DNA of 64,000 bases, from the NCBI GenBank assembly GCA_965112155.1, contig OZ218100.1. One strand, given 5' to 3'. The translations under genes and the position numbers were made by a program. The DNA is from Podarcis liolepis. Lineage: Eukaryota. Shown here piece after piece: positions 2,955 through 59,169 of the stretch. The notes under the pieces were generated by a model. It saw nothing but the letters and a program-made list of their open reading frames with translations, was not told the origin of the DNA and ran no database searches. Position 1 is the stretch's first letter, and the number at the start of each line of letters is the position of its first letter.

Positions 2955-3080
2955 GGTAGCTCAGTCAGTAGAGCATGAGGCTATGGGTTTGAGCCCCACA
3001 TTGAGTACAAGATCCCTGAATTGCAGGCCATTGTACTAGATGGCCCTTGGTGTCCCCTCCAATTGTACAATTCTATGGAT
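2955..3080 (+). mobile_element. tRNA-derived SINE with CR1-type 3' tail
   Basis: A-box-like gtagctcagtcagtagagc, B-box-like ggtttgagccc, tail ccctccaattgtacaattctatg resembling the CR1 3' end at ~55550-55603. Confidence 0.75.
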
Positions 3081-4310
3081 TTTGATGGTATGGAAGAATG
3101 AGGCAGCTTTAGGAGCTGTTGGGGATGCATAAAATGAAGTTGAGGGCTTCATATGGCCCCCAGGCTTCTCAAATGTGACATAACCTATCCTTTAAAGGTG
3201 TTATGTGCATGCATATGAAGAACTGGATTGTGTCTTTTCCAAAAAAGATAATTCTTCATTACTACCGCTCTTTAGTATTGCCCGTTCCCCTCCCTCTAAA
3301 ATCCTATATTAAGTATGATTTACATAACATCCACATTACTTAATAGATACTGTGAAAGATACTGAGTTTGGCATTCCTGAAGTGGGGAGTCTAAGAGGGC
3401 AAAGGATGTCGGGCCAGTCAAAGCCATAAAAAGGAGAATGATGAACATACATATACAGAGCTGCATAACTGATAAAGCCAGGAAGAGTGAATGTTGACAT
3501 TTCTGTGTTTCTGTCTGTTTCGATTGCATTTTAAAACTTGATATCTGTGGGGATTTTGCTGTTTTGTCTACATGTGATATGCGCAGTGGGGAAACAGCGA
3601 TCCACTGGATCAATCAATTCCTTGAAGGTTATACGCTTTGCTGGTGGTTTCAGGGTGGATAATTAAAAAAATATGCCTTACTGCAGGCTGGTGAAAGATA
3701 TGTTTGCTGACAGGGGCTTGTGGGAAGAGGTGGACTTCAAAGTGGCTGCTTGTTCAGAGCATGGAAAATGTATCAGTGAAGACAAATATTGTCAGAGTAC
3801 AGAGCTTGTGGTTTAAGCTCAGATGAATGAACACATCACTTCTGTAATGATGCAAAGGAGAAAAGATTGTAAATCTGGCTTCTCTGGGAAAAGTGAACTT
3901 TGAGTGAATTCTGAAGGCATTATTTCTACAGAAAGTGCTTTCAAATTTACATCAAAAGCAGAGCACAAAGCGCCTTCTTCTTTCTCTTTTTCTCAGCTCC
4001 ATCCACGCAGCTCAGCAAGTAAACATGGGAAGGCATTTTAATAGCTGGCAGTGCACTGTTTACCCACCGCTTTATCAAACAGGATGGCTGCAGAGAGTAA
4101 TCAAGGCTTCATATGGATTGCATTATTTTGATGCATGGTGTCATATTTTCTTACTGGTTCTGATACATCAGTGACTTTCAGTTCCTTATCTCAGTTTTGT
4201 GGCTTATAAACTGTAATTGACTGTCTCCAGGGACAACAGTAAACTATTTTTCCCTTTCCTGTTGTCATTTTTTGCCCTAAACTTTTATTGTGTGCTCTTT
4301 CCCTCCTTGA

Positions 4311-12531: not shown

Positions 12532-14050
12532 CCTATATGGGAAAGACATGTTTTGTTGCAGCCGGGGCAGATGAAAGCATCTGCTTACACTGATGCTTTC
12601 GTATTCAGAAGTGTTAGAAAAGTGAGAGCGAGAGGAAGTCAGGGCGAGGAAAAGTTGTACAGAAACATATCAAAGGATCGATTCACATATATCCTAGAGC
12701 AGATGACAAATCTTGGAGATGTGGGACAACAGGAGTGAAAATATCACGTTTGGTGTATGTGTACTAAGTTGTTCTGGGAGTTAGTGTTGGTGAACACCAA
12801 GGAAATGACAGGTTGTAGCAAAGCAGGCCCCATTAATCATTTTGTTTGGTAACACAGAAAATGAAGTAAACAGGGTGAATAGAGAAATGCTTACTTATGT
12901 ATTTACGGCTGTCAGAATGGCAGTCTGCCAAAAGTGGGAACAGAAAGAATCTCTGACACAAGAAGATGGTTGAATGGGATATGGGATACATGCTGAAGCT
13001 GACGGACAGGATCAAAAACAGAGAAGGTTGGCAAGGGAGTAAGAGCTTTATTGATAGATTGTCATTGTTTATTATGGATTGGAATAACAAAGTGCAACCG
13101 TATAACTTGCTGGGAGATGGGTAATAGATGACTGCAAATGTTCACTACTTCTCTTCAGTTTCCCTCCTCCCTTGTATAAAGCATATGGCATTTACTCTGT
13201 ACAGTATGTTTTTTAACCTCTGTATCTCACTTATGTTATGGATTAACACAAACAATTATAAGCTTGTATTACAACTTACTGCCATTTATTTTTAGTTTTA
13301 AAAATGAGGGGATTTATTTATTTTTTAAGAGCATTTTAGAAGGGAGGCATTTTTCAGGACTGCCAAAAATGTTCACAGGAAACTGAAGCTCTAGTTTCCA
13401 TGACTTGCTAGAAGACTTTTAAAACCCTTATGTTTTAGTGACCTTTAAAAGTCCCATCTGAAAACGTTCTTGCTGACTCTTCTGCAATTCTTTTTATTCA
13501 CTGTATGCTACCTTTTACAGCCTCTGTGATGAACACAAAGCTAAAGGGATTAAAATGGAGTTGATGGGTTGCCAAACCACTGGATGTTTTTTTTCTAAAC
13601 TACATTTATTTTTGCTTCTCTAGTTGTCCTTTGTCGCCCATCTGCTGGAATCCTCTTCTAGATAAGACCCATTACAAGCAAGTATTAGGCCATGGACTGT
13701 GCCTAGTCATTGACTATCATCTTTGTGCAGAACAATGGGCAGGAAGGTTACCCTCTACCTACACATCTAGACCCTGAGGAGTAACAGGAAGCACTGTGGA
13801 AAAAGGCATGCTGGAGCCTGGTATTTTTTGTGGTATTTTTTACATAAAGTGTGCTATTCATGTAGAAATGTTAACCCAAGTAAATAAAGCAAATCCAACT
13901 GTAATATTATTACTAATGCAGTGGTACCTTGGTTTACAAACTTAATCCGTTCCAGGTATCCTTTTGTCATTAAGTATAAAACACATTCATAAAATGTGTT
14001 CAATGAATTCCAGTCATTCTCTTTATAACTGGGACTTCCACAACTTTATT

Positions 14051-14872
14051 AGTCGGATCCTCCATCATGGAGGGCACGTGTTGTGGTGAGATCACCAGGA
14101 ACTGCATCCCTGTTGTGTGGTGGGACCGTTTGGATGGCCACAACACCTCATTGGTTACCCCTCTGTTGCTGGGGCAGAAATTTGGTCAGTTGGGTTGGCT
14201 ATTGGCTGCTGAGGGGCTACTTAAGCTGCTGCACATCGCTGGAGAGTTTCACTTTCTTGCAATGTGCAGCGGATCACCCGCCCTCCTCTCCCTATATTTA
14301 GGGTTGTTCTTATGACCTTGCTATGCCTGTATAGGGGTCGACTGTTTTGGAGCAGGGGCCCAATAGGAATTTTGCCATTTGGCTGATTGGCTGGTTCCAC
14401 TTGGTTTTTGCCTACCGTGAAGCAAATTGTCACAACTTTGTAAGGTTGGTGGTTAGGAATTTGGTTCAATGTTTTGGGAAGGGGACATGGTTGGCTGTGC
14501 CTGCCCCTCCATTGTTGTTGCTAGGGAATTACATTAAAGGAATCCAGGGGCTCACCTTGCTTTTGTCCGAACCCTGTCAAGGGGCTAGGGCCACGCCAGA
14601 GCCCCTGGGAGCATCTGGGGTGAGCTGTGAGATCAAAGCCATTTCTTGCTCCCCCAGGTTGCTTTCCCTTACTGACATATGGTGATGCCCAGTGTCAGTC
14701 CTGTTCCTGTCACTGTGCAGGTTCAGGTAGTCTGGAACCAATGCCTAAGCAACCACTCACATGCTGTAATCAATAAAGTTGTGGACAAAATTTAATGCCA
14801 AAAACCTTAAACTAAAATCTGTGTCTTTTATGTCTTCATTTGGGGGTGGTTTTGGGGGGTCTTCACATGCAA
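14051..14872 (+). mobile_element. Solo A-spacer-B unit of an Ngaro-like YR retrotransposon (no ORFs)
   Basis: 5' part has gcacgtgttg 23 nt from the start, as in the A end of the 42206-48690 element; 14312-14440 is homologous to the spacer at 24362-24480; 3' part aaccaatgcctaagcaaccactcaca...aataaagttgtgg...aaaaaccttaaac matches B of the minus-strand element; ends cacatgcaa (family end CACGCAA). Confidence 0.8.
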
Positions 14873-15199
14873 TTATTGCTATTATTTACTAAATTTGTAT
14901 AGCATCCTTTATCTACACATCTCAGGGTGGTACACTACAATTTAAAAACCACAAACAACATGGTAAAAATAAGAACAACAACAAATCCACAATCTCCCCT
15001 TAAAGCTGCTCTACTCGGCCAACCTGAACAAAGCTCAACAACCATACACTGGGATTTGCCAATTGCTTTACACCTCTCCTCTCCATTTGTCAGTACTGCT
15101 TGGGCAACAAAACCAGCTCCTGATAGGCTGTGATATTTTCTTCTTGATTCTCTGAAGCATGGTAGCAGTCTTGCTAGAATAAAATTATAAACTAAAAAG

Positions 15200-22277: not shown

Positions 22278-23027
22278 ATGAGAGCAGCACTTTTAATGCA
22301 GCAAATGGGAAACAAGAGAATTTCCTTTTCAGCAGGGATCTCGTACTTTTGTAAAACATTTTTCGAGAAGGACCCCTGCGCAGCCTTCATTGTGCGCAAA
22401 ACTCTGGAGGGATGGCGTAGGCAGCAACCCCCATGTGCGGACAGGAGGCGGCCTGTAACTTATGAAATTCTGTTTAAGATTCACAAAGTTCTTCGTGAAA
22501 TTTGCTGGTCAAAGCACGAAGCGCGTTTATTCTCAACAGCGTTTTCCATTGCTTTCTTCGGCGCCCTACGCGTAGGCGAGGTAGTATGTGAAGGGGATGC
22601 CAGCCAATCTCAGAGGGGAATTTTGATGAGCGACCTGACCCTGTCTAGAACCGATCTCATAGTGCGGGTGCGGAGCTCTAAGACAGATCAGCAAGGCAAG
22701 GGGGCCCTGCTCCGGCTGCCGGCAGCCCACGGGAAGGGCCCTTGTCCGGTTCGGGACACTAGGCGTTTTCTTTACCTAAGGCCTAGCGGCCCTGGTCCGC
22801 TGCTGATACATGCGGACGGATCCCGCCTTACTAGACACCAGTTCACTAGGGTTATGCGGTCGGCATTGTCGGCCTGTGGTTTCCCGGCATCAGAATTTGC
22901 TGCTCACTCCTTTCGTATTGGCGCAGCCACCACTGCAGTACATATGGGGCTCCCCACGGAGAGGATTAAGGACTTGGGGAGGTGGAAATCTAACGCGTAC
23001 AAAGCCTATGTGAGAAGCAACTTGTGA
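22278..23027 (+). CDS. Tyrosine recombinase of the YR retrotransposon, N-terminally truncated; first ~18 codons are host flank
   Basis: Catalytic motifs GALRVGE (R), SKTDQ (K), HSFRIG (HxxR), GRW, AYKAY (Y). Confidence 0.9.
   Translation: MRAALLMQQMGNKRISFSAGISYFCKTFFEKDPCAAFIVRKTLEGWRRQQPPCADRRRPVTYEILFKIHKVLREICWSKHEARLFSTAFSIAFFGALRVGEVVCEGDASQSQRGILMSDLTLSRTDLIVRVRSSKTDQQGKGALLRLPAAHGKGPCPVRDTRRFLYLRPSGPGPLLIHADGSRLTRHQFTRVMRSALSACGFPASEFAAHSFRIGAATTAVHMGLPTERIKDLGRWKSNAYKAYVRSNL
22288..22330 (+). repeat. Left copy of 43-bp target-site duplication
   Basis: cacttttaatgcagcaaatgggaaacaagagaatttccttttc, identical to 24872-24914. Confidence 0.92.
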
Positions 23028-23076
23028 CTGCGTGTTGCACCCCTGACCTCCGCCCACTGTTCTATTTGCTTTTCAG

Positions 23077-23657
23077 AACCCACGAGACTGCGCATTTGGT
23101 TGGTGGGCCACAGCATCGTGCACTGGGCCAAGTTTCATGCCTTGAGAAGCGGTCTGGGCGGCAACCTGAGTTTACATCCCAGGGTGGAGCTGGTTTGGAT
23201 AGCGCGTAGAGGGATGCGCTGGAGTGAATTCAAACCAGCCGTGATGGCCAGGGCTGCGGCCGAGGGTCCGCCTGACGCCCTAGTGATTCAATTGGGGGAA
23301 AACGATCTCGCTTATCGCAAGGCGATCGATCTGAGGTGGCACATTTTTGATGATCTGACCGAGTTGGTAATTGCATACCCTCATATCACAATAATTTGGT
23401 CCTCGTTGCTTGAGAGGAGGACATGGAGAGACTGCGTGAGCCCAGTAGGTGTCAACAAGGCGAGAAAGGTTTTAGAACGAGCGGTGGAACGTAGAGTGGC
23501 AGCTCTGGGCGGGTTCGTCATCAGACACCCGGGCATCCAGTTCAGCAACGAGGCCCTCTACAGAAGGGATGGCGTGCATCTGTCTGATGCAGGGAACGAC
23601 CTATGGTTGGGTGATATCATAGCGGGGATTAGGTCCTGGGTTCAGGGGTTCCCATAG
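23077..23657 (+). CDS. SGNH/GDSL-family hydrolase ORF of the element; no ATG upstream of the catalytic block I, preceded by a splice acceptor
   Basis: Blocks IWLVGHS, RRGMRW, QLGEND, DGVH; acceptor ctgac...ttctatttgcttttcag ends at 23076. Confidence 0.85.
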
Positions 23658-23713
23658 CAGGGCGTAGGAATTGGTTACAGGTTTGAAGGTATTGGCGGCG
23701 AGCCTTGCTCGAG

Positions 23714-24096
23714 TGGCGGTTAGGCATTGGCTGGGGTTCAATTGTTATGCAAATGGATGGGGGGGAAGGAATGCCATCACCTTCCCCCAGGAAATGGGGT
23801 AGTCCGGTACAGGACTCCGAGGGGCGTTGTCTTGTCCGAAACCTACCTAGGTAAGGGCCCCCGGCACGCCCCAAGCGGTGACACCCGTGGGATCCTAGTT
23901 GGCGTACTCCAACGGGGGCCTCCCACGGTTAGTGTTAACCCTTCCCGGACATCCTGCCGGGTAGCGGATAGGAGCCAATGCCTAGGGCCAATACCTTCAA
24001 TTCTCTAATCAATAAAGTTGTGGCCATTTCATGCCCATTAAACTTAAACATCGTGTCCTGTGTCTTTCTTTCTGGGGGAGGGGTTTTGACACGCAA
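23714..24096 (+). repeat. Split direct repeat B1 (383 bp) with AATAAA at 24011-24016
   Basis: Matches 24489-24871 at an offset of 775; ORF translations 23727-24008 and 24502-24783 are identical. Confidence 0.92.
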
Positions 24097-24335
24097 AGCC
24101 ATTTCTGACCATAAGGGAGGAGAGGGGGTTGCGGTCTAGCCCCTCCCCCCCAAGCGCGGGGGCTGACCTTGGCCCCCGCGAGAGTTGGGGGAATCCCTGG
24201 GCGTGCTCGCCACCCCGCCCGCCTATCGGCGGGCCGGGGGGAGGCGTGGCTTAGGGCATTTAAGCCTGGCACGCCCAGGGTCCGCCCTCTTCACTCCCCG
24301 ACCAGCTGAGAGGTTTTCCCTTCCCACCCACCCTT
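24097..24335 (+). repeat. Internal A2 repeat (copy of the element's promoter end)
   Basis: Follows the B1/A2 junction cacGCAAAgcc; GC-rich with TATA-like catttaag at 24257-24264; positional similarity to A ends of the other two elements; A1 is lost in this copy so the 3' limit is approximate. Confidence 0.65.
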
Positions 24336-24362
24336 AGACGTTTAGGTAGCCGTAGGTAGTCA

Positions 24363-24480
24363 TGACCTTGCTATGGACTTCGGTTGGTCGCCGCAAGGGG
24401 CCTGGTAGGAATTTTTCCAAGTTGGCGATCTTCCGCCAGTTGGTTTTTTCGCCTACCTCGTAGCAAACCGTCACAACTTT
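24363..24480 (+). ncRNA. Predicted structured RNA element (four-way junction with ENE-like U-rich internal loop) in the A2-B2 spacer
   Basis: Nested helices, cUUCGg and cGCAAg tetraloops, GGUAGG-AAUUUUU-CCAA...UUGG-UUUUUU-CG-CCUACC; architecture conserved at 14313-14440. Confidence 0.6.
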
Positions 24481-24488
24481 CCCTGTAT

Positions 24489-24871
24489 TGGCGGTTAGGC
24501 ATTGGCTGGGGTTCAATTGTTATGCAAATGGATGGGGGGGAAGGAATGCCATCACCTTCCCCCAGGAAATGGGGTAGTCCGGTACAGGACTCCGAGGGGC
24601 GTTGTCTTGTCCGAAACCTACCTAGGTAAGGGCCCCCGGCACGCCCCAAGCGGTGACACCCGTGGGATCCTAGTTGGCGTACTCCAACGGGGGCCTCCCA
24701 CGGTTAGTGTTAACCCTTCCCGGACATCCTGCCGGGTAGCGGATAGGAGCCAATGCCTAGGGCCAATACCTTCAATTCTCTAATCAATAAAGTTGTGGCC
24801 ATTTCATGCCCATTAAACTTAAACATCGTGTCCTGTGTCTTTCTTTCTGGGGGAGGGGTTTTGACACGCAA
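24489..24871 (+). repeat. Split direct repeat B2 with AATAAA at 24786-24791; element 3' end CACGCAA
   Basis: Copy of B1. Confidence 0.92.
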
Positions 24872-24914
24872 CACTTTTAATGCAGCAAATGGGAAACAAG
24901 AGAATTTCCTTTTC
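24872..24914 (+). repeat. Right copy of 43-bp target-site duplication
   Basis: Identical to 22288-22330; starts immediately after B2. Confidence 0.92.
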
Positions 24915-38164: not shown

Positions 38165-38310
38165 ACGATAGCTCAGCCAGTAGAGCATAAGGTTCTTAAC
38201 CACAGGGTCATGGGTTCAAGCCCAATGTTGGACAAAAGATTCCTGCATTGCAGGGGACTGGAAGAGACGATCCTTGTGGTCCCTTCCAACTCGATGATTC
38301 TATGATTCTA
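38165..38310 (+). mobile_element. tRNA-derived SINE with CR1-type tail
   Basis: atagctcagccagtagagcat...ggttcaagccc...gtggtcccttccaactcgatgattctatgattcta. Confidence 0.8.
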
Positions 38311-38650
38311 ATCCAATTATTAAGGTAGAGTTGCTAGAATGGAAACCTTTATAATGGTTAGGATCTCAAGTTAGGCTTGCTTAAGAGCTTGGATATGCTC
38401 ATTGTAACATTGTTCTAAAAAGTATAGGAGGGCCACACCCCATCCCCTATCACAAAGTATTGTTTAACTTTTCATTTTTAAAAGAGTTTAGCATGCTGCG
38501 CAGGAAACTATTCTGGAAACACACACTGAAAGCCAGCTTTGGGTGCATGTAACCAGTTGTATGGTTCTATGTATCCCAGAGATCCTGGTGCTGCTGCAGA
38601 ACATGATTTTGCTGGCCTGACTTGCTATTCATAGGATGCTAGTATAGCAT

Positions 38651-41943: not shown

Positions 41944-42206
41944 TCATTCATCTCTAGGTACATTTTATTTACTTCTCCAGCAAAATCTATATACCACTAA
42001 CTGAATTCCCCTGCCCCTCAAAAAACCCACACCTGAAAGTTATTTACATAAAACTGAGCTGTTCTATACCACTACTTGAACTTGTGTTGAGCTGTTTAAT
42101 GTCAGCTCTTAGATCCTGTGTTGTCAAGCAGATTTCAATTGTAAAATATTTATTCTCTGCTTTTTTATTAAACCCCATTGCCACCACCATCGGGCAATTG
42201 CAGCAT

Positions 42207-42642
42207 TTGCGTGCTGAGGTCCCACAAACATCCCTAACCCAATAACTCACACATCACACATCATTTTTGTTTAAGGTTTTTGGCATAATTTTGGCCACAA
42301 CTTTATTATCATACAAATTGTGAGTGGTTGCGTAGGCATTGGTTATGACTAGCTATCCCCCCCCGCCTTGGGGGATAGCACTGACTCCCGTATTCCAGCG
42401 CGAGTCAGTGTGGAGGAGCAACCTCAGGGCAACTGGGGCTGCGACACAGACCCTACAGTTCCTCCCTGCTTGCTCCTTGGGGTCTTACGCGGCCCGCACC
42501 CGGCACCACGGGTTTGGACAAGGGGGATGGTAAGCCCCAGAATTCCTTTAACGGAATTCCCATTCAGCAGCAGCATTGGAGGGGTAGGCACAGCCAATCC
42601 ATACCCCTCCACCAACCAATTTGACCAAATGCCTAACCGCCA
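42207..42642 (-). repeat. B terminal region (single copy) with AATAAA at 42307-42302
   Basis: Starts tggcggttaggcatt and contains aataaagttgtggcc, as in B1/B2 of the plus-strand element. Confidence 0.8.
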
Positions 42643-42671
42643 CCCGAGCCCTTAAGCTCGCCGCCAACCAC

Positions 42672-43246
42672 TCACAAGCCAAACCACACCCTCAACCCGG
42701 ACACCACTGTCCCCAACCACACATCATTCCCAACCAATGAAAGATGAACCCCATCATCCCTGTATAATTCAGCAGCTGTGTAGGATATACGAGGGTGAGG
42801 AATCACCAATCCACCCATGCCCACCACCAACTTGCCCACCGCGGAATTAATCCGCTTCCTAACTCTCTCGGTGGATGCTGGGCAGGGACTCCCCCGCCAA
42901 ATGCGGCGTTGAAGCAACTGAGACCAAATTAAAGTGGTATCAGGCACCATGGCCGACAGATCCCTTAAGTCCTGCAAAATGGCCATACGTAGCACATAGC
43001 AAGAAGAGGAAACCAAATCATTTTCCCCTAGCTGCACCACGATCGCCGAAGGAGGGCCAAGCCGGAGAACACGTCTTTGCATAAGCGGCAAGAATTCCCT
43101 CCAGCGCATCCCCCTTCTGTAAATCCAGGACACCTGCACGTGCTGTGGAAGGCCCAGGCCAGCTCCCAATCCAGACTGACGAGCTCTGACAGCAGCCCAA
43201 TGCACGATACTGTGCCCGACTATCCAGATACGGATAGTCTTCACAC
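42672..43246 (-). CDS. SGNH/GDSL-family hydrolase (ORF track 42672-43295; likely entered by splicing at 43246)
   Basis: IWIVGHS, RRGMRW, QLGEND, DGVH; homologous to 23077-23657. Confidence 0.87.
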
Positions 43247-43281
43247 CTAGGGTTAAAACAGAACATAAGTACACAGCCACA

Positions 43282-44145
43282 TTATTTCCGCACATAAGCT
43301 TTGAATGCCTCCGACCTCCACCGACCCAGGTCTTTTATCCTCTTTACCGATAACCCCCAGTGGGCAGCCGTCGTCGCAGCACCAATCCTGAAAGAGTGGG
43401 GGGCGAACTCAGATGCCTGAAGGCCGCATGCCGCCACGGCTTTGCGCAATACCTTAGTGAATTGACGGCGCACCAATGGGTGCCCATTTTCATGAACAAA
43501 CAGAGGCCCTCCACCCTCAGGCCGCCGGGCAAGGTACTTCTTGAGATCCTTTACCGGACAAGGGCCACTTTCCCCCGTCGCTGGGAGACGAATAATGGCT
43601 CCCCTCCCTAGCTGATCCGTCTTGGAATTTCTGATATTAACTTGCAGAGCAGACGGAGACACACTCACATCCTGTAGCAACAGGCCCCTGGAACTTCCAT
43701 CCTGCTTGGGCTCGAGGACCACCTCCCCGACCCTCAGGGCCCCGAAGAAGGCTAATGAGAAGGCTGCTGAAAATAAGCGAGCCTCATATGCCGACCAACA
43801 GATGCTACGTAATTTTTTATGCATCTGTGCCAGCAACTCAAATGTGATAGGCCGTCTAGGCACAGGTCTAGAAGGAGTGAGACGCCCCCATCCCTCCAGG
43901 GCTCTGCGTACCACAAATTTCCCACACGGATCTTTGTTGAAGTATGCCCTGCTAAAAAAGGAAATTGCTGCCGAATGAAGGCGCAGCGTCCTGACCGCCC
44001 GGCGCATCTGGAATAGATGCGCCAAATATTTGAGCACCTGAGATGTGGAATGGGGGGCAGTAACTTCCCCTACAACCGCCTGCCCATTAAATAATAAAAA
44101 ATCTGCCCAGGCCTTTTTATAGGACCGCAACGTAGATGGGGCCAC
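43282..44145 (-). CDS. Tyrosine recombinase (integrase); frame is open upstream to ~44270
   Basis: APSTLRSY N-terminal motif, GALRVGE, SKTDQ, HSFRIG, GRW, AFKAY. Confidence 0.93.
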   Translation of the reverse strand: MAPSTLRSYKKAWADFLLFNGQAVVGEVTAPHSTSQVLKYLAHLFQMRRAVRTLRLHSAAISFFSRAYFNKDPCGKFVVRRALEGWGRLTPSRPVPRRPITFELLAQMHKKLRSICWSAYEARLFSAAFSLAFFGALRVGEVVLEPKQDGSSRGLLLQDVSVSPSALQVNIRNSKTDQLGRGAIIRLPATGESGPCPVKDLKKYLARRPEGGGPLFVHENGHPLVRRQFTKVLRKAVAACGLQASEFAPHSFRIGAATTAAHWGLSVKRIKDLGRWRSEAFKAYVRK

Positions 44146-44168
44146 AGATGCAGCTACTCCCTGTAAAA

Positions 44169-45791
44169 CTAATTGCTGCCAAGGTTCCAGAGATGATCCG
44201 GGAAAATTTCCGGACGGTCTCGAGCCAGTGGCGCCAGGGACCTGAACCGCTCCATCTGAAAACGGGACAGAGCGTCAGCAATCTCATTAGATATGCCCGG
44301 TACGAAACGAGCAGAAAAAACAATGTTACAACGCAAACAATGTAATACAAAAACACGCAGCAAGGCAGATACCCTGGGAGATCGTGAAGACTGCTTGGCT
44401 AGTATATTCACCACCGCCTGGTTATCAGACCAAAAACAAACCCGATGGTCCTTGAAATGCTCAACCCACAGATGCACGGCCACTACAATGGGGAAAAACT
44501 CGAGAAAAGTTAAATCCCGAATTATAGCATCCCCACACCAAGCCGAAGGCCAGCGCTCAGCACACCACCTGCCATCCCAAAACAGACCAAACCCAAGGGA
44601 TCCCGCTGCATCTGAATGCACCTGGAAGTCATTGTGGAGGTTCAAAGTGTCCTGCCACAAGGACACACCATTGAAATCCTCCAGGAACTCCAACCAGATG
44701 TTAAGATCAGCCCGCACCTGACTAGACAGGCGCACCCTATGCTGCGGAGCCTGCAAACCCGCTGTGAGCCTGGCCAGGCGGGAGCAGAAAGGTCGCCCAG
44801 GGGCGACAACCCTGCAAGCAAAATTCAGATGACCTAGCAAGGACTGCAGCTGCCGTAAAGTAACCTTTTTTAACGGAAGCAAGTCCTCAATGACCTTCCT
44901 TAATGTACTAATCTTATCCGCTGGTAAGCTAGAGGTTTGGGCCACGGTATCCAGCCAGATACCCAAATAAGTCATTTTCGTAGAGGGACCTTCAGTCTTT
45001 TCCACCGCCAACGGAACACCTAACTCTTCCGTTAAAGAGGCAAAAGACTGCAACAACACAACGCAGTCCCCTGTATTAGACGCTGAGGCGACCAAAAAAT
45101 CATCCAAATAATGAGTGACCCCGCCCAAACCAGTTTTGTAACGCAGGGCCCACTCCAAAAATGAACTAAAACACTCAAAAGCTGCACAGGCAACAGAACA
45201 CCCCATGGGCATGGCCTTATCGAAGTAAAAACTACCTTCGAACTGGAAACCGAGTAACCAGAAATCACTAGGGTGAATTGGAAGCAGCCGGAATGCCGAC
45301 TCAATGTCGCATTTGGCCAGGAGGGCACCAGGCCCAAACTTCCGGATCATCTTGATCGCGTGATCAAGGGAAGCGTATTTCACCGAACAAAGCCCCGGGG
45401 GAATTACGTCATTTACTGACGTGCCTCTAGGGTGAGAAAGATTATGAATGAGGCGGAATTCCCCAGGGGCCTTCTTAGGGACTATCCCCAAGGGTGAAAT
45501 ATGCAGATTAGAAAAAGGTGGGACAGAAAAGGGGCCGGCCATACGATGTAAAGCCAGTTCTTTCTGTATTTTCCTGCGCGCCACTTCTGGCATTTCTTTT
45601 ACTGATTTCTGGTTAACAAGTCTCCCAGATATAGGGGCTGACGCCACAGGAATCCTGAAGCCTGAGGAGAAGCCCTCACGCAAATAAGACGCCGCTTCCT
45701 TATCAGGGTATCGCTCCAATAAAGACAATAACGGCTGTAGCCGTACTGGGGTATAGGCCAGGGAAGACAGGATACTATTTTCCTGTTCCAA
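44169..45791 (-). CDS. Reverse transcriptase/RNase H, DIRS/Ngaro type
   Basis: SPLGIVPKK, FRLIHNLS, AKCDIESAFR, MPMG, YLDD; RNase H acidic motifs SDAAG, LEFFP, SDN, ADALSR. Confidence 0.95.
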   Translation of the reverse strand: MEQENSILSSLAYTPVRLQPLLSLLERYPDKEAASYLREGFSSGFRIPVASAPISGRLVNQKSVKEMPEVARRKIQKELALHRMAGPFSVPPFSNLHISPLGIVPKKAPGEFRLIHNLSHPRGTSVNDVIPPGLCSVKYASLDHAIKMIRKFGPGALLAKCDIESAFRLLPIHPSDFWLLGFQFEGSFYFDKAMPMGCSVACAAFECFSSFLEWALRYKTGLGGVTHYLDDFLVASASNTGDCVVLLQSFASLTEELGVPLAVEKTEGPSTKMTYLGIWLDTVAQTSSLPADKISTLRKVIEDLLPLKKVTLRQLQSLLGHLNFACRVVAPGRPFCSRLARLTAGLQAPQHRVRLSSQVRADLNIWLEFLEDFNGVSLWQDTLNLHNDFQVHSDAAGSLGFGLFWDGRWCAERWPSAWCGDAIIRDLTFLEFFPIVVAVHLWVEHFKDHRVCFWSDNQAVVNILAKQSSRSPRVSALLRVFVLHCLRCNIVFSARFVPGISNEIADALSRFQMERFRSLAPLARDRPEIFPDHLWNLGSN

Positions 45792-47304
45792 CGGCTGGCA
45801 CCTGGGGAGCAGCTTTAGGGGGCTGCTGAGAGCCCCCTCCTTTTCGAAAGGGACGCCGTCCCGCTACACACGCAGAAGCCGGGTGATTCCCTGAGCACTT
45901 CTCACACGTGTGGGAATACTTGCATGGCTGGCGTTGGCAAACACCCCTGTTAAAGTCCCAACAAAACAACCTGCGCCCCGTCTTTAGAGGGAGCGCCTTG
46001 AATCTCTGTGGATCAGGGGTCTTTTTATCAATCCTGGGGGCCACATAAGTAGACCAAACGTCCAGGTCCTTCCTGTCCCAGCGAGCCGTAGGAATCTTGG
46101 CTGCCCTACGCCTAAAATTCTGGTCATAGGCCAATGCAGCGGCCTCTCCCGCCATCGTAAAGGCAGAACGCACTATGGACAGGTACACCCATAGATGCAA
46201 AGATCTCCTGGGATAAGCTGCGGAAACCACTCCAGCAAAAACCTGAAAACTATCCATCCAGCGTTCGAAAGTCCTATCTGCCTTAGCTACGTACGTACGC
46301 TTTTTTGAGGTAGAAGAGCCTCTATCCAAAGGCTCCTGACCCTCAAGTGGAGGAGCCAGGCTGAAAATGTCCACATACCGCCCATTCAATATCCGGGACC
46401 GCAGTTTAGTGGACAAGTGGGCCCCCGGGATAAGATCCCTGGCCGAATTGGTGGAGACTCTTACGTCAGGAAGCAGAACCCCCTCATGGCACTCTTGCAC
46501 TGCCCCATACCGTGCCCTATGGGAATTCACCCTGCGCTCCCAGATCCACTTAGGAAGCCCTGAGCTCTCACCGAAACCCCAATAAAGCTTAAGGGAAGCT
46601 TCCTCATCACTAGAGGAACTCAAGGACGAAGTACCTGAGGAAGAAGAGGATGACGTGTCTCTCCGTCTCCGCTTTGCGCGCCTCTTGGAGGCCTTCTTCC
46701 GGCGACGGTGCCCACCAGAGGAAGCCCTTGGAGGTGGGGGAAGGCTATCCTCCACGGAAGACTCGGACCCATCACCCTCCTGCGCCATACCTGGAACTGA
46801 CTGAAAAGAGACAACCTGTGAATGACCCGGACTCACTCTCCCGGCCGCAGAAGACTGCACTGTTGCGGTACCCTTACGATGGCCCCGGGTCAACCCCCTC
46901 CTCCTGGCCACAACTCTAGAGCGGCCACGACCCCTAGGTGCGGCCACCTGCGACACAGGTAGAACCGGGGGCTGAGGCAGCTGCACCACTGGAAGGCAAC
47001 CCCCTGCCAACAATGATTCGCTCTCCTCTTCACTAGACAAAGCCCCCGGGGAGGAGACACCCCCAGGAGGAGCCAGCATCGCTGATGAAGTCGAAGGGGT
47101 TGAGCAGCGGTGCAAGATGCCATCCATCTCCGCTTCAACCCGCGCCAGTGCTGCCGAGTCGCCAGCCAAACTGGAGACCATAGATTGGATGCGCTTCAAA
47201 GACTGGCCAGGCACAGGAGAGCGAAGGGCCTGAGACGGGCCTTTTATAGGCCTTTTTGTAGCAGGGGCAGGAACAGGCCTCTTTGTTGCCTTCTTTGGCG
47301 CCAT
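45775..47304 (-). CDS. ORF1, gag-like protein
   Basis: 509 aa; low-complexity basic/Ser-rich N-half, core RILNGRYVDIFSL...LAYDQNFRR, C-terminal Cys/His finger CWDFNRGVCQRQPCKYSHTCEKCSGNHPASAC. Confidence 0.88.
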   Translation of the reverse strand: MAPKKATKRPVPAPATKRPIKGPSQALRSPVPGQSLKRIQSMVSSLAGDSAALARVEAEMDGILHRCSTPSTSSAMLAPPGGVSSPGALSSEEESESLLAGGCLPVVQLPQPPVLPVSQVAAPRGRGRSRVVARRRGLTRGHRKGTATVQSSAAGRVSPGHSQVVSFQSVPGMAQEGDGSESSVEDSLPPPPRASSGGHRRRKKASKRRAKRRRRDTSSSSSSGTSSLSSSSDEEASLKLYWGFGESSGLPKWIWERRVNSHRARYGAVQECHEGVLLPDVRVSTNSARDLIPGAHLSTKLRSRILNGRYVDIFSLAPPLEGQEPLDRGSSTSKKRTYVAKADRTFERWMDSFQVFAGVVSAAYPRRSLHLWVYLSIVRSAFTMAGEAAALAYDQNFRRRAAKIPTARWDRKDLDVWSTYVAPRIDKKTPDPQRFKALPLKTGRRLFCWDFNRGVCQRQPCKYSHTCEKCSGNHPASACVAGRRPFRKGGGSQQPPKAAPQVPAVGTGK

Positions 47305-48489
47305 TCCTGTAGCTGGTATAATAAAGCAAAATTAATCAACAAGGAAGAACAAACAATAAAATTAAACAATAAAGAAGTTTTGTTTTATTATATTATTACT
47401 ATTAAGTGGAAGGTAAGAATGGCTGAAAATAAAATAAAATAAATTAATAAATGACCAGCAGGCAAGCTGTGACCAGTCGCTACTAAACAGTGCAATACTT
47501 GGCCACCAATGAAACAGGCTGCAAAACCAATGCAATTAACAACCAGCAGTAAAAGCCACCACCAGCGTTGGCTATTGCCTCACAACCCAACAAGTGACAA
47601 GGCCTGCTGTTAAGCACAAGCAGGCCTGGTCGATACCAGGCCTGGCCACTAGAGGCCGCTGCTGCACCAGAAAGGGGACAAAATGGCGCTCCCGCCAAAA
47701 TCGCCTCAAAATGGCGGACCTGCCACACCCCACCTAGGACAAACCTACAAGGTAAGAAAACTGGGGCGAGGTCAGCGCTGAGAGGAGCCCCAGGCCCAAG
47801 GCCACACCGGCAAAGGGTCAGGCGATCGCGGGGCGCGTGGGTGCTGCGCAGAGCCGCCGATTCCCCGGCCCCGTCCCCCGCGCGCTAGGCAAGGCCGCCC
47901 GAGCCTCCGAGCCCCGCCCTGGAGGCCGACGGGCACCCGCGCGCCAAGGCCCTGGTCCTACCGCTCCAAACGGGGCCCGAAATCGACGCAAGCCGGCAGA
48001 AACCGCCCCGCCGCTCAGCTGAGCCAGGGGACGCGTCTAGGGAAGCCGCTCGGCGCGCCGCCCCCACCCGCTAGCCCCCGACGAGATCGGGATGGACCCA
48101 GGAGTGGGAGGGAAACGGAAGGCCCGATCCGGGCCGAGGAGCGCCGGGCGATCCCAGAGCCGGTAGGCCCCGCGGAAGGTGAACTGCGCGGCGCAGCAGG
48201 GCTCCACGCGCACCGAGGCGCGCCCCGCATGGGAGTCTAGGCACCCCGGCCCGGGCGCCCAGCCGCGATCCGGCTGCCGGCTGCCCGGTCAGAAGCCCCC
48301 CTCCCCGGCAAGATGAGGTATTAAATATGAGGTGAGAGAAAATTAAATAATGAGCAAGGGATAAGGAAACAGGAGGGAATTAATACAACAAATTAAAAAG
48401 GAGAAATAAAGAGTAGAAATAAATCAGGGGAGAAGAGTACAACCAGTCTCTCGCTGTTCACTCCGATACAGATGATCCAGTGTCCACAG

Positions 48490-48686
48490 CGAAAGAGAAA
48501 GGAACAAGCTGTGCACCTTGTATAAATAACCTCTGATCCCACCCATTAAATTGGCAACATCAATTTTTCCCTAGTAACAACAACCACCAATCTGACCCAA
48601 GTCCCTTGCAACAGCCTGGCTAGTAACTGAGGATGCTTGTCCGGCCCCATCCGCAACACGTGCTCTCCTCTTAGTGAGAACACGCT
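48490..48686 (-). promoter_or_regulatory. Putative Pol II promoter in the A terminal region
   Basis: TATTTATA at 48528-48521, CCAAT at 48554-48550, E-box CACGTG at 48657-48662, pyrimidine-rich initiator-like tract ~25 nt downstream of the TATA. Confidence 0.5.
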
Positions 48687-49535
48687 TTGCCATAGCCTAA
48701 TTAGAATTAGATCTATAGTTCTCAGCTATTATTACAGGAACATCTAATAAACAAACTTCACAGAAAACTTGAATGAACAGATGATGGTGGTAAATCATAC
48801 ATGAACAGCAGATTCCATAAAATGTGATCAGTTTCAGGGCTTGCAATAGCCATATATTTGAGGGCCTGAGATCTACCAAATAAATAAATATATACCATTG
48901 AAAAATATAATTACAATCCTTTCTGTAGCTCAACAGGAAGCGAGAGAATCCTCATCCTTCCGGCAATGCAAAGCTTAAAATAGTAAACAACAGTAGACTG
49001 ATTTCTGAATGCGTTAAGCATGGCATTTTCATCTCTTTAATTTTCACTTGTTCCTGGAAACCTTTGAGTGTGCAATGGCAAAAGAACTGCAGCTTTATTT
49101 TCTGGTTAAATATTACAAATATTAATAATTCATGTGTGGACTATATATTATTAATCTTGTTTAGCAGCTAGACAGAAGCTGTGTGCAAGTGGCTGTGGTT
49201 AAAGAGACTCACAGCTCTTTCCCAACAGACGCAGAGAAAAGTATACCACAGTGTATGGGGCTACACTGGTACAAAATGGTCAGTGTACAAAATGGTTCAT
49301 TGATGTGTGTGTCTATACACACAGCCTCTGCTATAAAAAGGATAGAGGGATGCTCTTTTATGCAACGAAAAGACTGGTAGATTATTATTTTTCTTTTCTT
49401 TTCTGGCTCGCAGTTCTAGCAACCAGTGTTATGTCTTTACTGACTGGTTGTTTTGAGTACATCTTTTTTCTACTTTAGTGATAAACATTGCATGCGGAAA
49501 GTGCTGGGTTTTTCTTTCGTTTTAGAAGAATTATA

Positions 49536-54194: not shown

Positions 54195-55830
54195 CATGGC
54201 ATGTTCATCCAAATGACTTGGATGAAGGAATTGACAGGATGCTCATCAAATTTGCAAATGATGCCAACCTGGGAGGGCTAGCCAATGCCACAGAAGACAG
54301 TATCAGGATTCAACATGACTTTAACAGATTGGAGAACTGGACCCAAACTAGCAAAATGAATTTCAATAGGGACAAATGTAAGGTTCTGCACTTAGGCAGG
54401 AAGAACCAAATGCACAAATAACAAGGAGGAGGAGGATGACACCTGGCATGCCAGTAGTACAAGTGAGAAGGATCTAGTGGTCTTTGTAGTCCAGAAGCTT
54501 GTCATGAGTCTACAGTGTAATGCAGCAACAAAAAAAGCTAATGCTTTTTCAGTGGATTTGTAACTGGCTGACTGACCGAACCCAAAGGGTGCTCATCAAT
54601 GGTTCCTCTTCATCCTGGAGAAGAGTGACTAGTGGGGTGCCACAGGGTTCTGTCTTGGGCCCGGTCTTATTCAACATCTTTATCAACGACTTGGATGATG
54701 GACTCAAGGGCATCCTGATCAAATTTGCAGATGACACCAAACTGGGAGGGGTGGCTAACACCCCAGAGGACAGGATCACACTTCAAAACAACCTTGACAG
54801 ATTAGAGAACTGGGCCAAAACAAACAAGATGAACTTTAACAGGGAGAAATGTAAAGTATTGCACTTGGGCAAAAAAAATGAGAGGCACAAATACAAGATG
54901 GGTGACACCTGGCTTGAGAGCAGTACATGTGAAAAGGATCTAGGACTCTTGGTTGACCACAAACTTGACATGAGCCAACAGTGTGACGCGGCAGCTAAAA
55001 AAGCCAATGCAATTCTGGGCTGCATCAATAGGAGTATAGCATCTAGATCAAGGGAAGTAATAGTGCCACTGTATTCTGCTCTGGTCAGACCTCACCTGGA
55101 GTACTGTGTCCAGTTCTGGGCACCACAGTTCATGAAGGACACTGACAAACTGGAACGTGTCCAGAGGAGGGCAACCAAAATGGTCAAAGGTCTGGAAACA
55201 ATGCCTTATGAGGAACGGCTAAGGGAGCTGGGCATGTTTAGCTTGGAGAAGAGGAGGTTAAGGGGTGATATGATAGCCATGTTCAAATATATAAAAGGAT
55301 GTCACATAGAGGAGGGAGAAAGGTTGTTTTCTGCTGCTCCAGAGAAGCGGACACGGAGCAATGGATCCAAACTACAAGAAAGAAGATTCCACCTAAACAT
55401 TAGGAAGAACTTCCTGACAGTAAGAGCTGTTCCACAGTGGAATTTGCTGCCAAGGAGTGTGGTGGAGTCTCCTACTTTGGAGGTCTTTAAGCAGAGGCTT
55501 GACAACCATATGTCAGGAGTGCTCTGATGGTGTTTCCTGCTTGGCAGGGGGTTGGACTTGATGGCCCTTGTGGTCTCTTCCAACTCTATGATTCTATGAT
55601 TCTATTCTAGGCTGCATCAACAGAACTATAGTGTCCATATCAAGGGAAGTCATAGTACCGCTCTATTCTGCCTTGGTCAGATCACACCTGGAGCACTGTG
55701 TCCAGTTCTGAGAACCACAGTTTAAGAAGGATATTGACAAGCATGAAGGTGTGCAGAGGCAGGCAAGCAAGATGATTCAGGGTCTGGGAACTAATAATAA
55801 TAATAACAACAACAACAACAACAAACAACA

Positions 55831-55878
<48 letters not shown>

Positions 55879-56292
55879 TATTTGTATCCCACTCATCTGA
55901 CTGGGTTGCCTCAGCCACCAAGCCTTATGAGGAACGGTTGAGGGAAATGCGTATGTTTGGCTTGGTAAAGAAGAGACTGAGTGAGATATGATAGCCATCT
56001 TCAAATGTCTAAAGGGCTGCCACATGGAAGATGGGACAAGTTTCTTTTCTCCTGTTCTGGAGGGTAGGCCTTGAACCAATGGAATCAAGTTACAAGAAAA
56101 GAGATTCCTACTAAACATCAGGAACAACTTTCTGATCGTTAAGAGCAGTTCAACAGTGGAATGGACTCACTAGGAGGCTGTGTGTTCTTCTTCACTGGAG
56201 GTTTTAAAGTAGACCATTTGAGATTTCTGCATTGCAGAGGATTGCACTAGATGACCCTCAGGGTCTCTTCCAACTCTACAATACTATGATTC
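54195..56292 (+). mobile_element. Older degenerate CR1 LINE, split by a young CR1 and by a microsatellite/L2-tail insert (~55793-55920)
   Basis: LIKFANDANLGG...[14 protein letters not shown] at 54218-54421; resumes at attctaggctgcatcaac (55604) and runs to a CR1-type tail; stops and frameshifts. Confidence 0.85.
54546..55603 (+). mobile_element. Young 5'-truncated CR1 LINE with open RT C-terminal frame
   Basis: [35 protein letters not shown]; (ATTCTATG)n tail. Confidence 0.95.
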
Positions 56293-59169
56293 TAAGTACA
56301 CAAGAAAATTCTTATTTTTGATCTTTCAGATAATTTTCAAGGACATCTTCCAAGGATATTTGTTTTCTTCCAGATGTCCCTCCCTCCATTTTCTAGGTGA
56401 ACTTTGATCACTTAGCAGTAAAATACAGAATGAAGCACCTCAGAAGAATCAATCCTCTCTCAGTGGGTAAGATCACTTACTTAAGGTTAAGCCCTAAAAG
56501 CATTATGTGTCTCTTACAAAGATATTCTTTGTAGGTGTGACAGATTACATCTCGTATTGTTAGCAGAAAGCCTAAGAAAAGTATAGACATGTTTAAAATG
56601 TACTGCTGTATGGAACAGAATGTAGCTTCTAAGGAGACAAAGAATCCATGAATGCCTAGGGGGGATGTACGATACGCTGAAATATGACTATTTCAAATCT
56701 TATTAAGGTGGTTTTGTGGAGGTATAAATCATCATCAAAGAAGAAGAAGTAAAGTAGCACACATAAGAGAGAGAGGAGAAAACAGGAGTTGCATATGCTA
56801 ATGTATGCAAATGTACAATGACTATTTTTTATTTCACCATAGTGGGGAAGAATGTGACCAGGTGAGCTTTCTTTCTGCAAAGTCTGCTGTCCAACTACTA
56901 ATTGCTGATGGGCAACTTCAAGGCCCTGCTCTCCCTTCTTGGGTTTAGCTTGCCTGATGGAACAATCTCCCCTCTGCTCCCCTTGCATACTGCTGTGCAG
57001 GTTCTCCAGGACACACACACCCCAAGCCAATTCTGCAGGGTACATAGGGCATGCACAGGCAGGTGAGAGAGGGGAAGTTATGTTGCTCTATATGAGAAGC
57101 TCCTGCTAACACACCTTAGCTGAATCATCCCTTTTATCTTCAAACCAGACTTGGACCAGGCAGGGCTCCTTCAAGCAGACGACTGTGAAGTCAGACACAT
57201 GGCCAAACTAGCTGTAGTTCAAGGAAGGTCTGGTTATCTAACACTTCCATAGCTCCTAATCTTTAACTGGACAGTCATATTGCTCAAATTCTCTGTCCAA
57301 TTATACAATATATCCTTGGTTCTCTGAGAGGGCCTTTGGGAAATGTCCTTTTCCAAAGCGCTACTGGCATTGCTCTGTCAAAAGAAGGGCTGATTCCATA
57401 GGACAGAACCACACAATCAATTGCACTTGTATAGTTGCATCATTCTGCTATGTGCCATTGACTCATGGAAGAGCAGCTCCATCTAGCCAGAAATATATCA
57501 AAAGGATACCTGAGAGATCTGAAGGAAAATTATTTATAATCAAGCCCATCTATCAGTTGCATAATCTGACTTCTTAAGTTCTCATTCATGGGCAGAGTCA
57601 TTCCCTAAAAACACTCAGTCATTTGGCCTCTTCATAAGATGATACTAAAATATTCATTTGGACCATAAATTATAAAGCAACAAGAACAATGACAAGGAAA
57701 CAGATTGAAGGCTTTTATTCTAATGCATGATGGCACGCACAGGTTATGGGATAGTACAGTACAAGATGTTTCTGCCCTGTTCTTATTAGCACTTCACTGT
57801 TTCTAAGTGACCAACGCAAAACATTAGCCATAAATTTATTACAGATGTTAATACAGTCAAGTCTTTCTTGTGGATTGTCCAAAGTTAAACCACAGCACTA
57901 AAATGGTAACCTGGTACATGCCATTATTTCCCCTCACACAGCTAAATTCCCAGAATTCTGTGGGGAGGGAGGATTGTTAAACCAGTCTGGGAATTGTAGC
58001 TCTGGGAAGAGCACTCTTAAACTACAGTTCCCAGGATTCTTTGGGGGAAGACATGACTGCTCAGAGTGGTTTAAAAGTGCTTTAAATGTTCGGTACAGGT
58101 GTGCCCAAAGCTTCAATGGATACAAAAGGCTCCCTGTTTCAGACTGTAGGGTTATGGACCCATGGCACATGCCTACTGAATAGTGAAATGAGTTTTAGAG
58201 TACTTAATAAGTGCTTAAATAATAACTATACAGCTATAAATTGTTATTCAATGATTTCCAATTAAGAACTCATCTCCTTGCGAAGTGTGGGGAAAAATTA
58301 GTTGGGACAAGGCTCTAACTGAACTCTGTTAAGAACTCTGTAGAAATTAGATAATAGTGTTCAACACCCTAGGGGGAGCTTGTATTTAACAACCAAAAAA
58401 ATTCATTGGAACTTCAAGTCATTACACCATTTTGTTATGCTTAAGTGACAACAACCATGAAACCTTTTGTTTAAATCTCTTTTATGTAGCGCAACTTTGG
58501 CTAAAGTTAACTTAGACCCTAGTGCTGTTTTTTCTCCATCTATGTTTCAAACAAAGCAGCAGCTCATTGGCATCATCGCTTCCTGGCCCAATTATAAATC
58601 CACAGAAATGCACAATACATCAGGTTTCTTATCCGTGCTCATTTTATTGGTGTACAGTAAGTGTATTGCCAGGAGGAAAAGCCATAAACACTTCTGTACT
58701 CCCCAATCATTTGACCATATTTAAGAGCTAAATTATTTCTACAGCTTTGGGAGTTTGGAAGCCCTGTTGGCCAACCAACAGAATCAGCTGAGTTAATTGT
58801 AAAATGGAAATTGGAGAGTCAGTGATAAGAAAAATGAACAGTGAGCCAGAATAAGCATTTGCTACACTGACTGCTGATGAATAAGCAACAAGATATATGT
58901 AAAAACCAGGGCTGAGCATGCCTGCCTCCAGACTAATTTGGGATCCAACCCAGTGCCTCAGAGCAGCCCTGATCTGACTTGGGATGATCTGATACAGACC
59001 TGACCAAGATCAGGGTCCCAAACTGAATCAGGAGCCTTGCACAGTCTTTGCTGAGAGTTTAACACCCTCATTAATATATATGGTCAGCGAGGCTACTGGC
59101 ATGTGTCTGCTTCTCACCCACATCATCGCCCAACTGCCCTCCTTGTGAAAGCCTTGGGTTGCTCTGGGA

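Follow-up and report, generated by a model that had tools for sequence, protein, structure and literature searches.

The window analysed here, a 64,000-nt stretch of contig OZ218100.1 in the Podarcis liolepis assembly GCA_965112155.1, carries Ngaro-like retrotransposon sequences in three states of completeness (Table 1). The most complete, a diverged full-length element on the minus strand (the 42k element), has Gag, RT, YR and SGNH ORFs, with Pfam matches to RVT_1, Phage_integrase and Lipase_GDSL_2 and a CCCH finger in the Gag ORF, which is the combination that identifies the host as a Ngaro-type YR retrotransposon. An earlier note made from the letters of this DNA had already called it Ngaro-like, with which both these ORFs and the B1/B2 repeats agree. 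The 42k element ends after a single B and is without A2-spacer-B2. A 5'-truncated element (the 24k copy) keeps the YR C-terminus, the SGNH/GDSL ORF and a 3' cassette B1-A2-spacer-B2; this part of the split direct repeats is present while A1 is missing as a result of the truncation. B1 and B2 of this copy are 100% identical over 383 nt (BLAST), so that it is young, and the AATAAA that the same note placed in each of them is found there by direct reading. A protein search with the SGNH ORF returned 22 relatives, mostly from Podarcis, of which the closest are from Podarcis muralis and P. lilfordi.

The third sequence is a solo A-spacer-B unit of a diverged family, whose B is 68% identical to that of the 42k element and about 62% identical to that of the 24k copy (BLAST). 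The three A sequences (24k copy, solo unit and A1 of the 42k element) align from their start to the onset of the spacer, at which point A1 diverges. In Cafeteria, Ngaro is known to occur also as isolated AB repeats (PMC8547959), and the 42k element and the solo unit look like paired reciprocal products of B x B and A x A recombination.

The boundaries of these copies show some further features. A direct duplication of host DNA of 43-47 nt, with one mismatch, flanks the 24k copy (22284-22330 / 24868-24914), and the 3' boundary of this copy is the exact end of B (cacgcaa). Since a long target duplication and a 5' truncation are unexpected for tyrosine-recombinase integration, they suggest that a linear cDNA was captured where the DNA had a staggered break. 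Both boundaries of the 42k element are GCAA (5' GCAA-AGCG, 48683-48693; 3' CACGCAA, 42206-42212), and these bases recur at the B1/A2 junction of the 24k copy (24093-24100), which fits a short crossover site. Directly upstream of the solo unit, CCACAACTTTATT (14040-14052) is the reverse complement of a conserved B block, AATAAAGTTGTGG.

Table 1. Ngaro-like copies in the window and features of the A2-B2 spacer
Feature	Position	Strand	Basis or remarks
Solo A-spacer-B unit, diverged family	14050-14873	+	spacer 14313-14442; P4-like core 14364-14414
5'-truncated Ngaro-like element (24k copy)	22331-24871	+	Pfam Phage_integrase, Lipase_GDSL_2; repeats
B1 repeat	23714-24096	+	AATAAA 24011-16, then AAAGTTGTGGC at 24014-24
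A2 repeat	24097-24362	+	TATA-like CATTTAAGCC 24257-66; start aligns with solo-unit A and A1 of the 42k element
Spacer of the 24k copy	24363-24488	+	between A2 and B2
Conserved block	24359-75	+	P1 5' strand
Four-way junction P1-P4, about 100 nt (predicted)	24368-24466	+	MFE, ensemble, strand asymmetry
P4, ENE-like arm	24404-24457	+	descriptor match; pair probability 0.93-1.0
Conserved block	24405-20	+	P4 lower stem, U tract, CCA; UAGGAAUUUU-CCA
5' U tract (U5)	24412-24416	+	unpaired probability 1.0
Conserved block	24440-57	+	UUGG, U tract, CCUACC; UUGGUUUUU-G-CCUACC
3' U tract (U6)	24444-24449	+	unpaired probability 0.97-1.0
Conserved block	24462-80	+	P1 3' strand and 11-nt tail
Anti-PAS tail GUCACAACUUU	24470-24480	+	complementary to bases just after AAUAAA in B
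B2 repeat	24489-24871	+	AATAAA 24786-91; pairing partner AAAGUUGUGGC 24789-99; GU-rich region downstream
Full-length diverged Ngaro (42k element)	42206-48693	-	Gag, RT, YR, SGNH ORFs; ends after single B

Predicted structure of the A2-B2 spacer

In the 24k copy, the spacer is predicted to fold into a four-way junction, of which all four helices had been drawn by eye in the earlier note and were confirmed by direct reading. P1 joins ttgctatg (24368-75) to cgtagcaa (24459-66), P2 is GAC-UUCG-GUU (24376-85), P3 is GGUC-G-CC-GCAA-GG-GGCC (24386-24402) and P4 is the long arm described below. The MFE of 24363-24480 is -43.8 kcal/mol (z -3.41, with none of 200 shuffles as good) and the exact structure drawn beforehand comes to -40.1 kcal/mol. 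P1 is formed in the ensemble with a pair probability of 0.99 and the three segments of P4 all lie in the range given in Table 1; at P2 and P3 an alternative pairing takes up part of the ensemble (p 0.3-0.47). For the antisense strand the fold is at chance level (z -1.09), which argues that the structure belongs to the sense strand of the element. As judged by these folding models, the fold is real in one young copy.

P4 has a G-C-rich lower stem GGUAGG (24404-09) / CCUACC (24452-57), an internal loop AAUUUUU / UUUUUUCG, an upper stem CCAA-G-UUGGCG / CGCCAG-UUGG and an apical loop AUCUUC. The outline of helix, U-rich internal loop and helix, for which it had been likened to an ENE, is thus present, with tracts of five and six U in the loop (an ENE has about five on both strands), flanking stems and a conserved AAUAAA downstream. 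On the upper side the loop is directly adjoined by G-C pairs (C24417-G24443 and C24418-G24442); on the lower side, G24409-C24452 is separated from the U tracts by AA/CG, a 2-nt step that reads AA/G in the solo copy. The AATAAA with its GU-rich downstream region lies ~330 nt 3' of P4, and the predicted helices would bring this signal close.

How rare such an arm is was estimated with a descriptor of our own approximation, set against a background that is the mean of 100 dinucleotide shuffles. In its strict form, which asks for five or more U on either side of the loop, upper and lower stems of no fewer than 4 bp, the upper one closed by G-C, and linkers no longer than 2 nt, the sole match in 128 kb, i.e. 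both strands of the window, is 24404-24457, where 0.05 would be expected. The relaxed form, whose matches include the solo copy, finds 3 against 2.16 expected per window. The comparison with Rfam models that had been called for gave no support, in that no family of Rfam 15, with whichever ENE models it includes, matches at gathering score or at E<=10. DNA pattern scans of viral contigs and genome contigs gave no match to the motif, nor did a protein-guided scan of viral contigs, and in a metagenome scan the only match, in a bacterial contig rich in AT, was fortuitous.

Three bases beyond the junction begins a short tail. The anti-PAS tail, GUCACAACUUU, can pair with AAAGUUGUGGC in both B1 (24014-24) and B2 (24789-99) over 11 bp with one G.U, and this partner overlaps the last three bases of AAUAAA in the 24k copy. 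In the solo unit the helix has lost one end and extended the other, giving 12 bp (14430-14441 / 14773-14784) that cover five bases of AAUAAA. In both families it forms in the minimum-energy fold of RNA running from the spacer to the poly(A). The B repeat is itself predicted to fold closed, its 5' and 3' ends pairing as UUAGGCAUUGG with CCAAUGCCUA; this closing helix is retained in all three B copies (24485-24815; 14443-14812; 42280-42650 on the minus strand) with three compensatory pairs, and the overall covariation term for B is not favourable. Taken together, the anti-PAS and B closing helices predict an RNA in which the junction is followed by 3 nt and then by a composite long-range stem that closes the B2 domain, before a short 3' tail and the poly(A). 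On this model the anti-PAS tail could serve as a mask of the poly(A) signal or as a tether holding the 3' end beside the junction, and the covering of three to five AAUAAA bases means that its helix may instead serve poly(A)-site choice. The TATA-like box of A, a putative promoter, precedes the junction by ~100 nt, so that the module would presumably be carried by a short A2-initiated RNA as well.

Comparison with the diverged solo copy

A global alignment of A-spacer-B between the 24k and solo families has 47% identity, and of the eight blocks with an identity of at least 13/15, half fall in the ~120-nt spacer (Table 1), where they are far better conserved than the A and B sequences that flank them. 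The apical part of P4 has been replaced between the two families. Since the conserved blocks cover the lower stem, the U tracts and CCA/UUGG, what is conserved of P4 is the part that an ENE core would need, and both copies retain the G-C pairs that flank the loop. A 14-mer, ATGACCTTGCTATG, is identical in both families, as is TGACCTTG at the start of the spacer (24363-70; 14313-14320).

The claim that the structure is conserved in the solo unit survives only in part. Its sequence blocks are there and so is the order P1-P2-P3-P4, but its own MFE is a different fold (z -0.41) in which the 5' U tract is paired elsewhere, and forcing the junction on it costs ~9 kcal/mol above that MFE. Its U tracts are U4 on the 5' side and U5 on the 3' side, and for its P4 upper stem shuffled sequence does equally well (p 0.52). 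The copy favours the version of P3 drawn in the earlier note, with a new distal helix (p 0.16 versus shuffles); in P2 both sides have changed in all three pairs, which amounts to only 3 bp (p 0.035 versus shuffles). A structured covariance model (R1) scores the solo copy at 42.2 bits and a sequence-only model (R2) at 38.5, so that structure adds 3.7 bits in a comparison of two copies. Conservation of the structure, as far as two sequences show it, is weak, and decay of the solo unit may be all that lies behind this. BLAST and a filter-free covariance-model search of the window for further spacer copies found the 24k and solo spacers only, and with two copies covariation statistics are impossible.

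The motif was searched for at the 5' A end of the 42k element by BLAST, by the covariance model and by alignment, which agree that it is absent there, as had been noticed beforehand; the accompanying suggestion that it is specific to the 3' cassette holds as well, the motif being found in the A2-B2 spacer only.

Possible functions of the spacer module

The A2-B2 spacer is probably a real cis-acting RNA module of B2-terminated transcripts. Only transcripts that read past the poly(A) signal of B1 and terminate at B2 would contain it, namely the read-through genomic RNA and any short A2-initiated RNA, and it would comprise the four-way junction and, three bases on, the 11-nt tail that pairs after AAUAAA in B. 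Pairing of the tail, together with the B2 closing helix, would bring the cleavage site and the poly(A) tail beside the junction, where the poly(A) could sit in the U loop of P4 as U.A-U triples and be shielded from deadenylation. With its poly(A) clamped, the B2-terminated RNA would outlast the B1-terminated mRNA. Transcription, polyadenylation at B2, triplex formation and stabilization are all presumed in this scheme.

That P4 acts as an ENE, i.e. as a poly(A) clamp, is the leading proposal for its role, a tentative one that we hold to be possible yet doubtful. It is favoured by the outline of P4, its rarity by chance, the conservation of its core, the G-C pairs by the loop and the predicted tether to the poly(A) site, and also by a location like that of the Evade ENE (PMC12501189), in a long non-coding stretch ahead of the 3' repeat. 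It is disfavoured by the AA/CG step, by the U4 tract and weak upper stem of the solo copy and by the lack of an Rfam match. The ENE of KSHV PAN RNA resembles P4 in having a U-rich loop with ~5 U per strand and G-C flanks, upstream of the poly(A) site of its own RNA (PMC7583470, PMC13541005). P4, here a candidate clamp, is however a branch of a four-way junction, has AA/CG before its lower stem and a poly(A) signal ~330 nt downstream, and is without a covariance-model match. Closer in setting are the ENEs of transposable elements, which sit in the 3' regions of retrotransposon RNAs and raise mobility, and among which that of Evade has G-C pairs directly beside the U tracts that were found to be essential (PMC12501189). 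Those listed in a review come from plants, fungi and slime mould, with a stickleback retrovirus as a precedent in a vertebrate retroelement (PMC7583470). Like the Ngaro spacer, the ENEs and double ENEs of rice TWIFB1, Arabidopsis Evade/Copia93, fungal and slime-mould elements and the stickleback retrovirus have their U-rich loop in an unusually long non-coding spacer near a 3' repeat, and the protection of the poly(A) tail proposed for them (PMC12501189, PMC7583470) is what is proposed for P4. Their hosts differ in being LTR or DNA transposons, for the most part from plants and fungi, and many of them have a double domain, whereas here the host is a lizard Ngaro of the DIRS order and the domain is single. 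MALAT1-like triple-helix and tRNA-like loci have been reported in anole lizards (cited in PMC10869381). The MALAT1-type triple helix with mascRNA likewise puts U-rich motifs by a multi-branched fold in a lizard genome, although the Ngaro motif has neither an encoded A-rich tract nor a tRNA-like fold and is followed by a normal AAUAAA instead. A literature search for links of Ngaro or DIRS elements to ENEs or triple helices found none.

About the same likelihood attaches to recognition of the spacer by the element's own proteins, either for packaging by the CCCH-finger Gag or for the start of minus-strand cDNA synthesis by RT, and it too is possible though doubtful. The module would then mark the read-through RNA, the sole RNA with the B1-A2 junction needed to rebuild the ends, and its U-rich loop would be a protein-binding site or a dock for the 3' end during priming. 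Such a role would suit a motif that is unique to the spacer and absent after A1 and that is close to the 3' end, from which cDNA synthesis has to begin; the Gag ORF has a CCCH finger, and the anti-PAS fold-back would place the 3' end beside the junction. The primer of the DIRS order is unknown, and for DIRS-1, which has an internal complementary region (ICR), a priming hairpin at the 3' end has been suggested (PMC7192593). DIRS-1 is comparable in its order and in having non-coding sequence near the 3' end, which in DIRS-1 is needed for replication, but its ICR is complementary to the element ends and acts at the cDNA stage, whereas the Ngaro motif, located outside the B1-A2 junction, has no complementarity of this kind. 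A poly(A) tail would, however, block simple snap-back priming from a paired 3' end, and the resemblance to an ENE core would have to be coincidental.

The anti-PAS tail might alternatively be the functional core of the spacer, governing poly(A)-site choice, with the junction as a mere scaffold that presents it. Identical signals in B1 and B2 pose a problem that retroviral LTRs solve by occlusion, as with the poly(A) hairpin of HIV-1, and the Ngaro cassette resembles this type of occlusion in that its two repeats have the same poly(A) signal and AAUAAA is overlapped by a complementary segment. In the read-through RNA the tail would pair with the B1 signal region and block late cleavage at B1, leaving B2 free, or else it would damp the use of B2 in the short A2-initiated RNA. 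The overlap with AAUAAA in each copy (three bases in the 24k copy, five in the solo copy), a helix of 11-12 bp retained with shifted ends and the position of the tail and its B partner among the most conserved blocks all speak for such a switch. Unlike the hairpin of HIV-1, though, the Ngaro helix is long-range (310-445 nt) and is formed by a unique spacer rather than locally within the repeat, and the tail, transcribed 445 nt after the B1 signal, arrives late. A switch would also leave the conserved U tracts and P4 lower stem unexplained, and an 11-bp match has a chance expectation of ~0.07, a rough estimate for regions of these sizes. On balance we regard it as improbable, to the same degree as a chance fold in one young copy whose similarity to the solo spacer reflects common descent without structural constraint. 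Chance would account for the solo copy folding otherwise when left alone, for the relaxed descriptor finding hardly more than is expected (3 versus 2.16) and for the meagre 3.7 bits added by structure, and the site was chosen post hoc. It seems difficult to reconcile with the z of -3.4 of the young copy (0/200 shuffles), with the 0.05 matches expected of the strict descriptor and with spacer blocks conserved far above the flanking A and B. Least probable of all, and in our view very much so, is a constraint on the DNA, in which the blocks would bind transcription factors or belong to the A2 promoter as downstream elements, with the RNA fold incidental. TGACCTTG is the reverse complement of CAAGGTCA, which we take to be a monomeric nuclear-receptor half-site of the NR5A/ERR type, and the identical 14-mer ATGACCTTGCTATG lies ~100 bp downstream of the A2 TATA-like box. 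Against this, the conserved blocks contain two separate sets of complementary segments (UAGG/CCUA and CCA/UGG), the fold is specific to one strand, and the same putative promoter in A1 works without these blocks.

To return to the poly(A) clamp, reviews place ENE-type clamps in viruses, in two vertebrate lncRNAs and mainly in plant and fungal transposons (PMC7583470, PMC13541005), and among animal mobile elements they cite the stickleback retrovirus alone (PMC7583470). If real, the clamp would extend the ENE mechanism to the DIRS order by way of a lizard Ngaro, and its novelty would lie in a single domain inside a four-way junction, in the anti-poly(A)-signal tether and in a tyrosine-recombinase retrotransposon as host. 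It is unlikely, though, that vertebrate YR retrotransposons have such a new ENE architecture in full, namely a junction-embedded single U-loop clamp with an anti-poly(A)-signal tether by which the read-through genomic RNA alone is protected and marked for reverse transcription. The RNA biology of the DIRS order is almost unknown, its primer, packaging signal and poly(A)-site choice being undescribed, and a motif in the unique A2-B2 spacer suggests a way for the element to tell genomic RNA from mRNA. Were it a signal for RT or Gag instead, Ngaro would gain its first proposed signal of that kind.

Several other identities of the motif were considered and rejected. A coding region is discounted, since the 33-codon ATG ORF that spans the motif loses its frame in the solo copy, and the TGG-led segment that might be a tRNA primer-binding site is not conserved there. 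A tRNA-like or mascRNA cloverleaf was found neither by ARAGORN nor by Rfam (including any mascRNA or MALAT1 model present). Ribozymes with four-way junctions (hairpin, twister-sister) have no Rfam match at E<=10, and the spacer has an internal loop in one arm only. For a pseudoknot between the P4 apical loop and the 3' end, the only match is a G.U-rich one of 7 bp past the likely cleavage site. A likeness to the 3'-UTR of CR1 LINEs was dismissed after a BLAST comparison in which none of the window's four CR1-type 3' ends matched the spacer. These ends, which have ATTCTATG-like terminal repeats, lie at 3013-3086, 38240-38313, 55534-55607 and 56224-56297, and an ORF at 54520-55527 is a LINE RT fragment.
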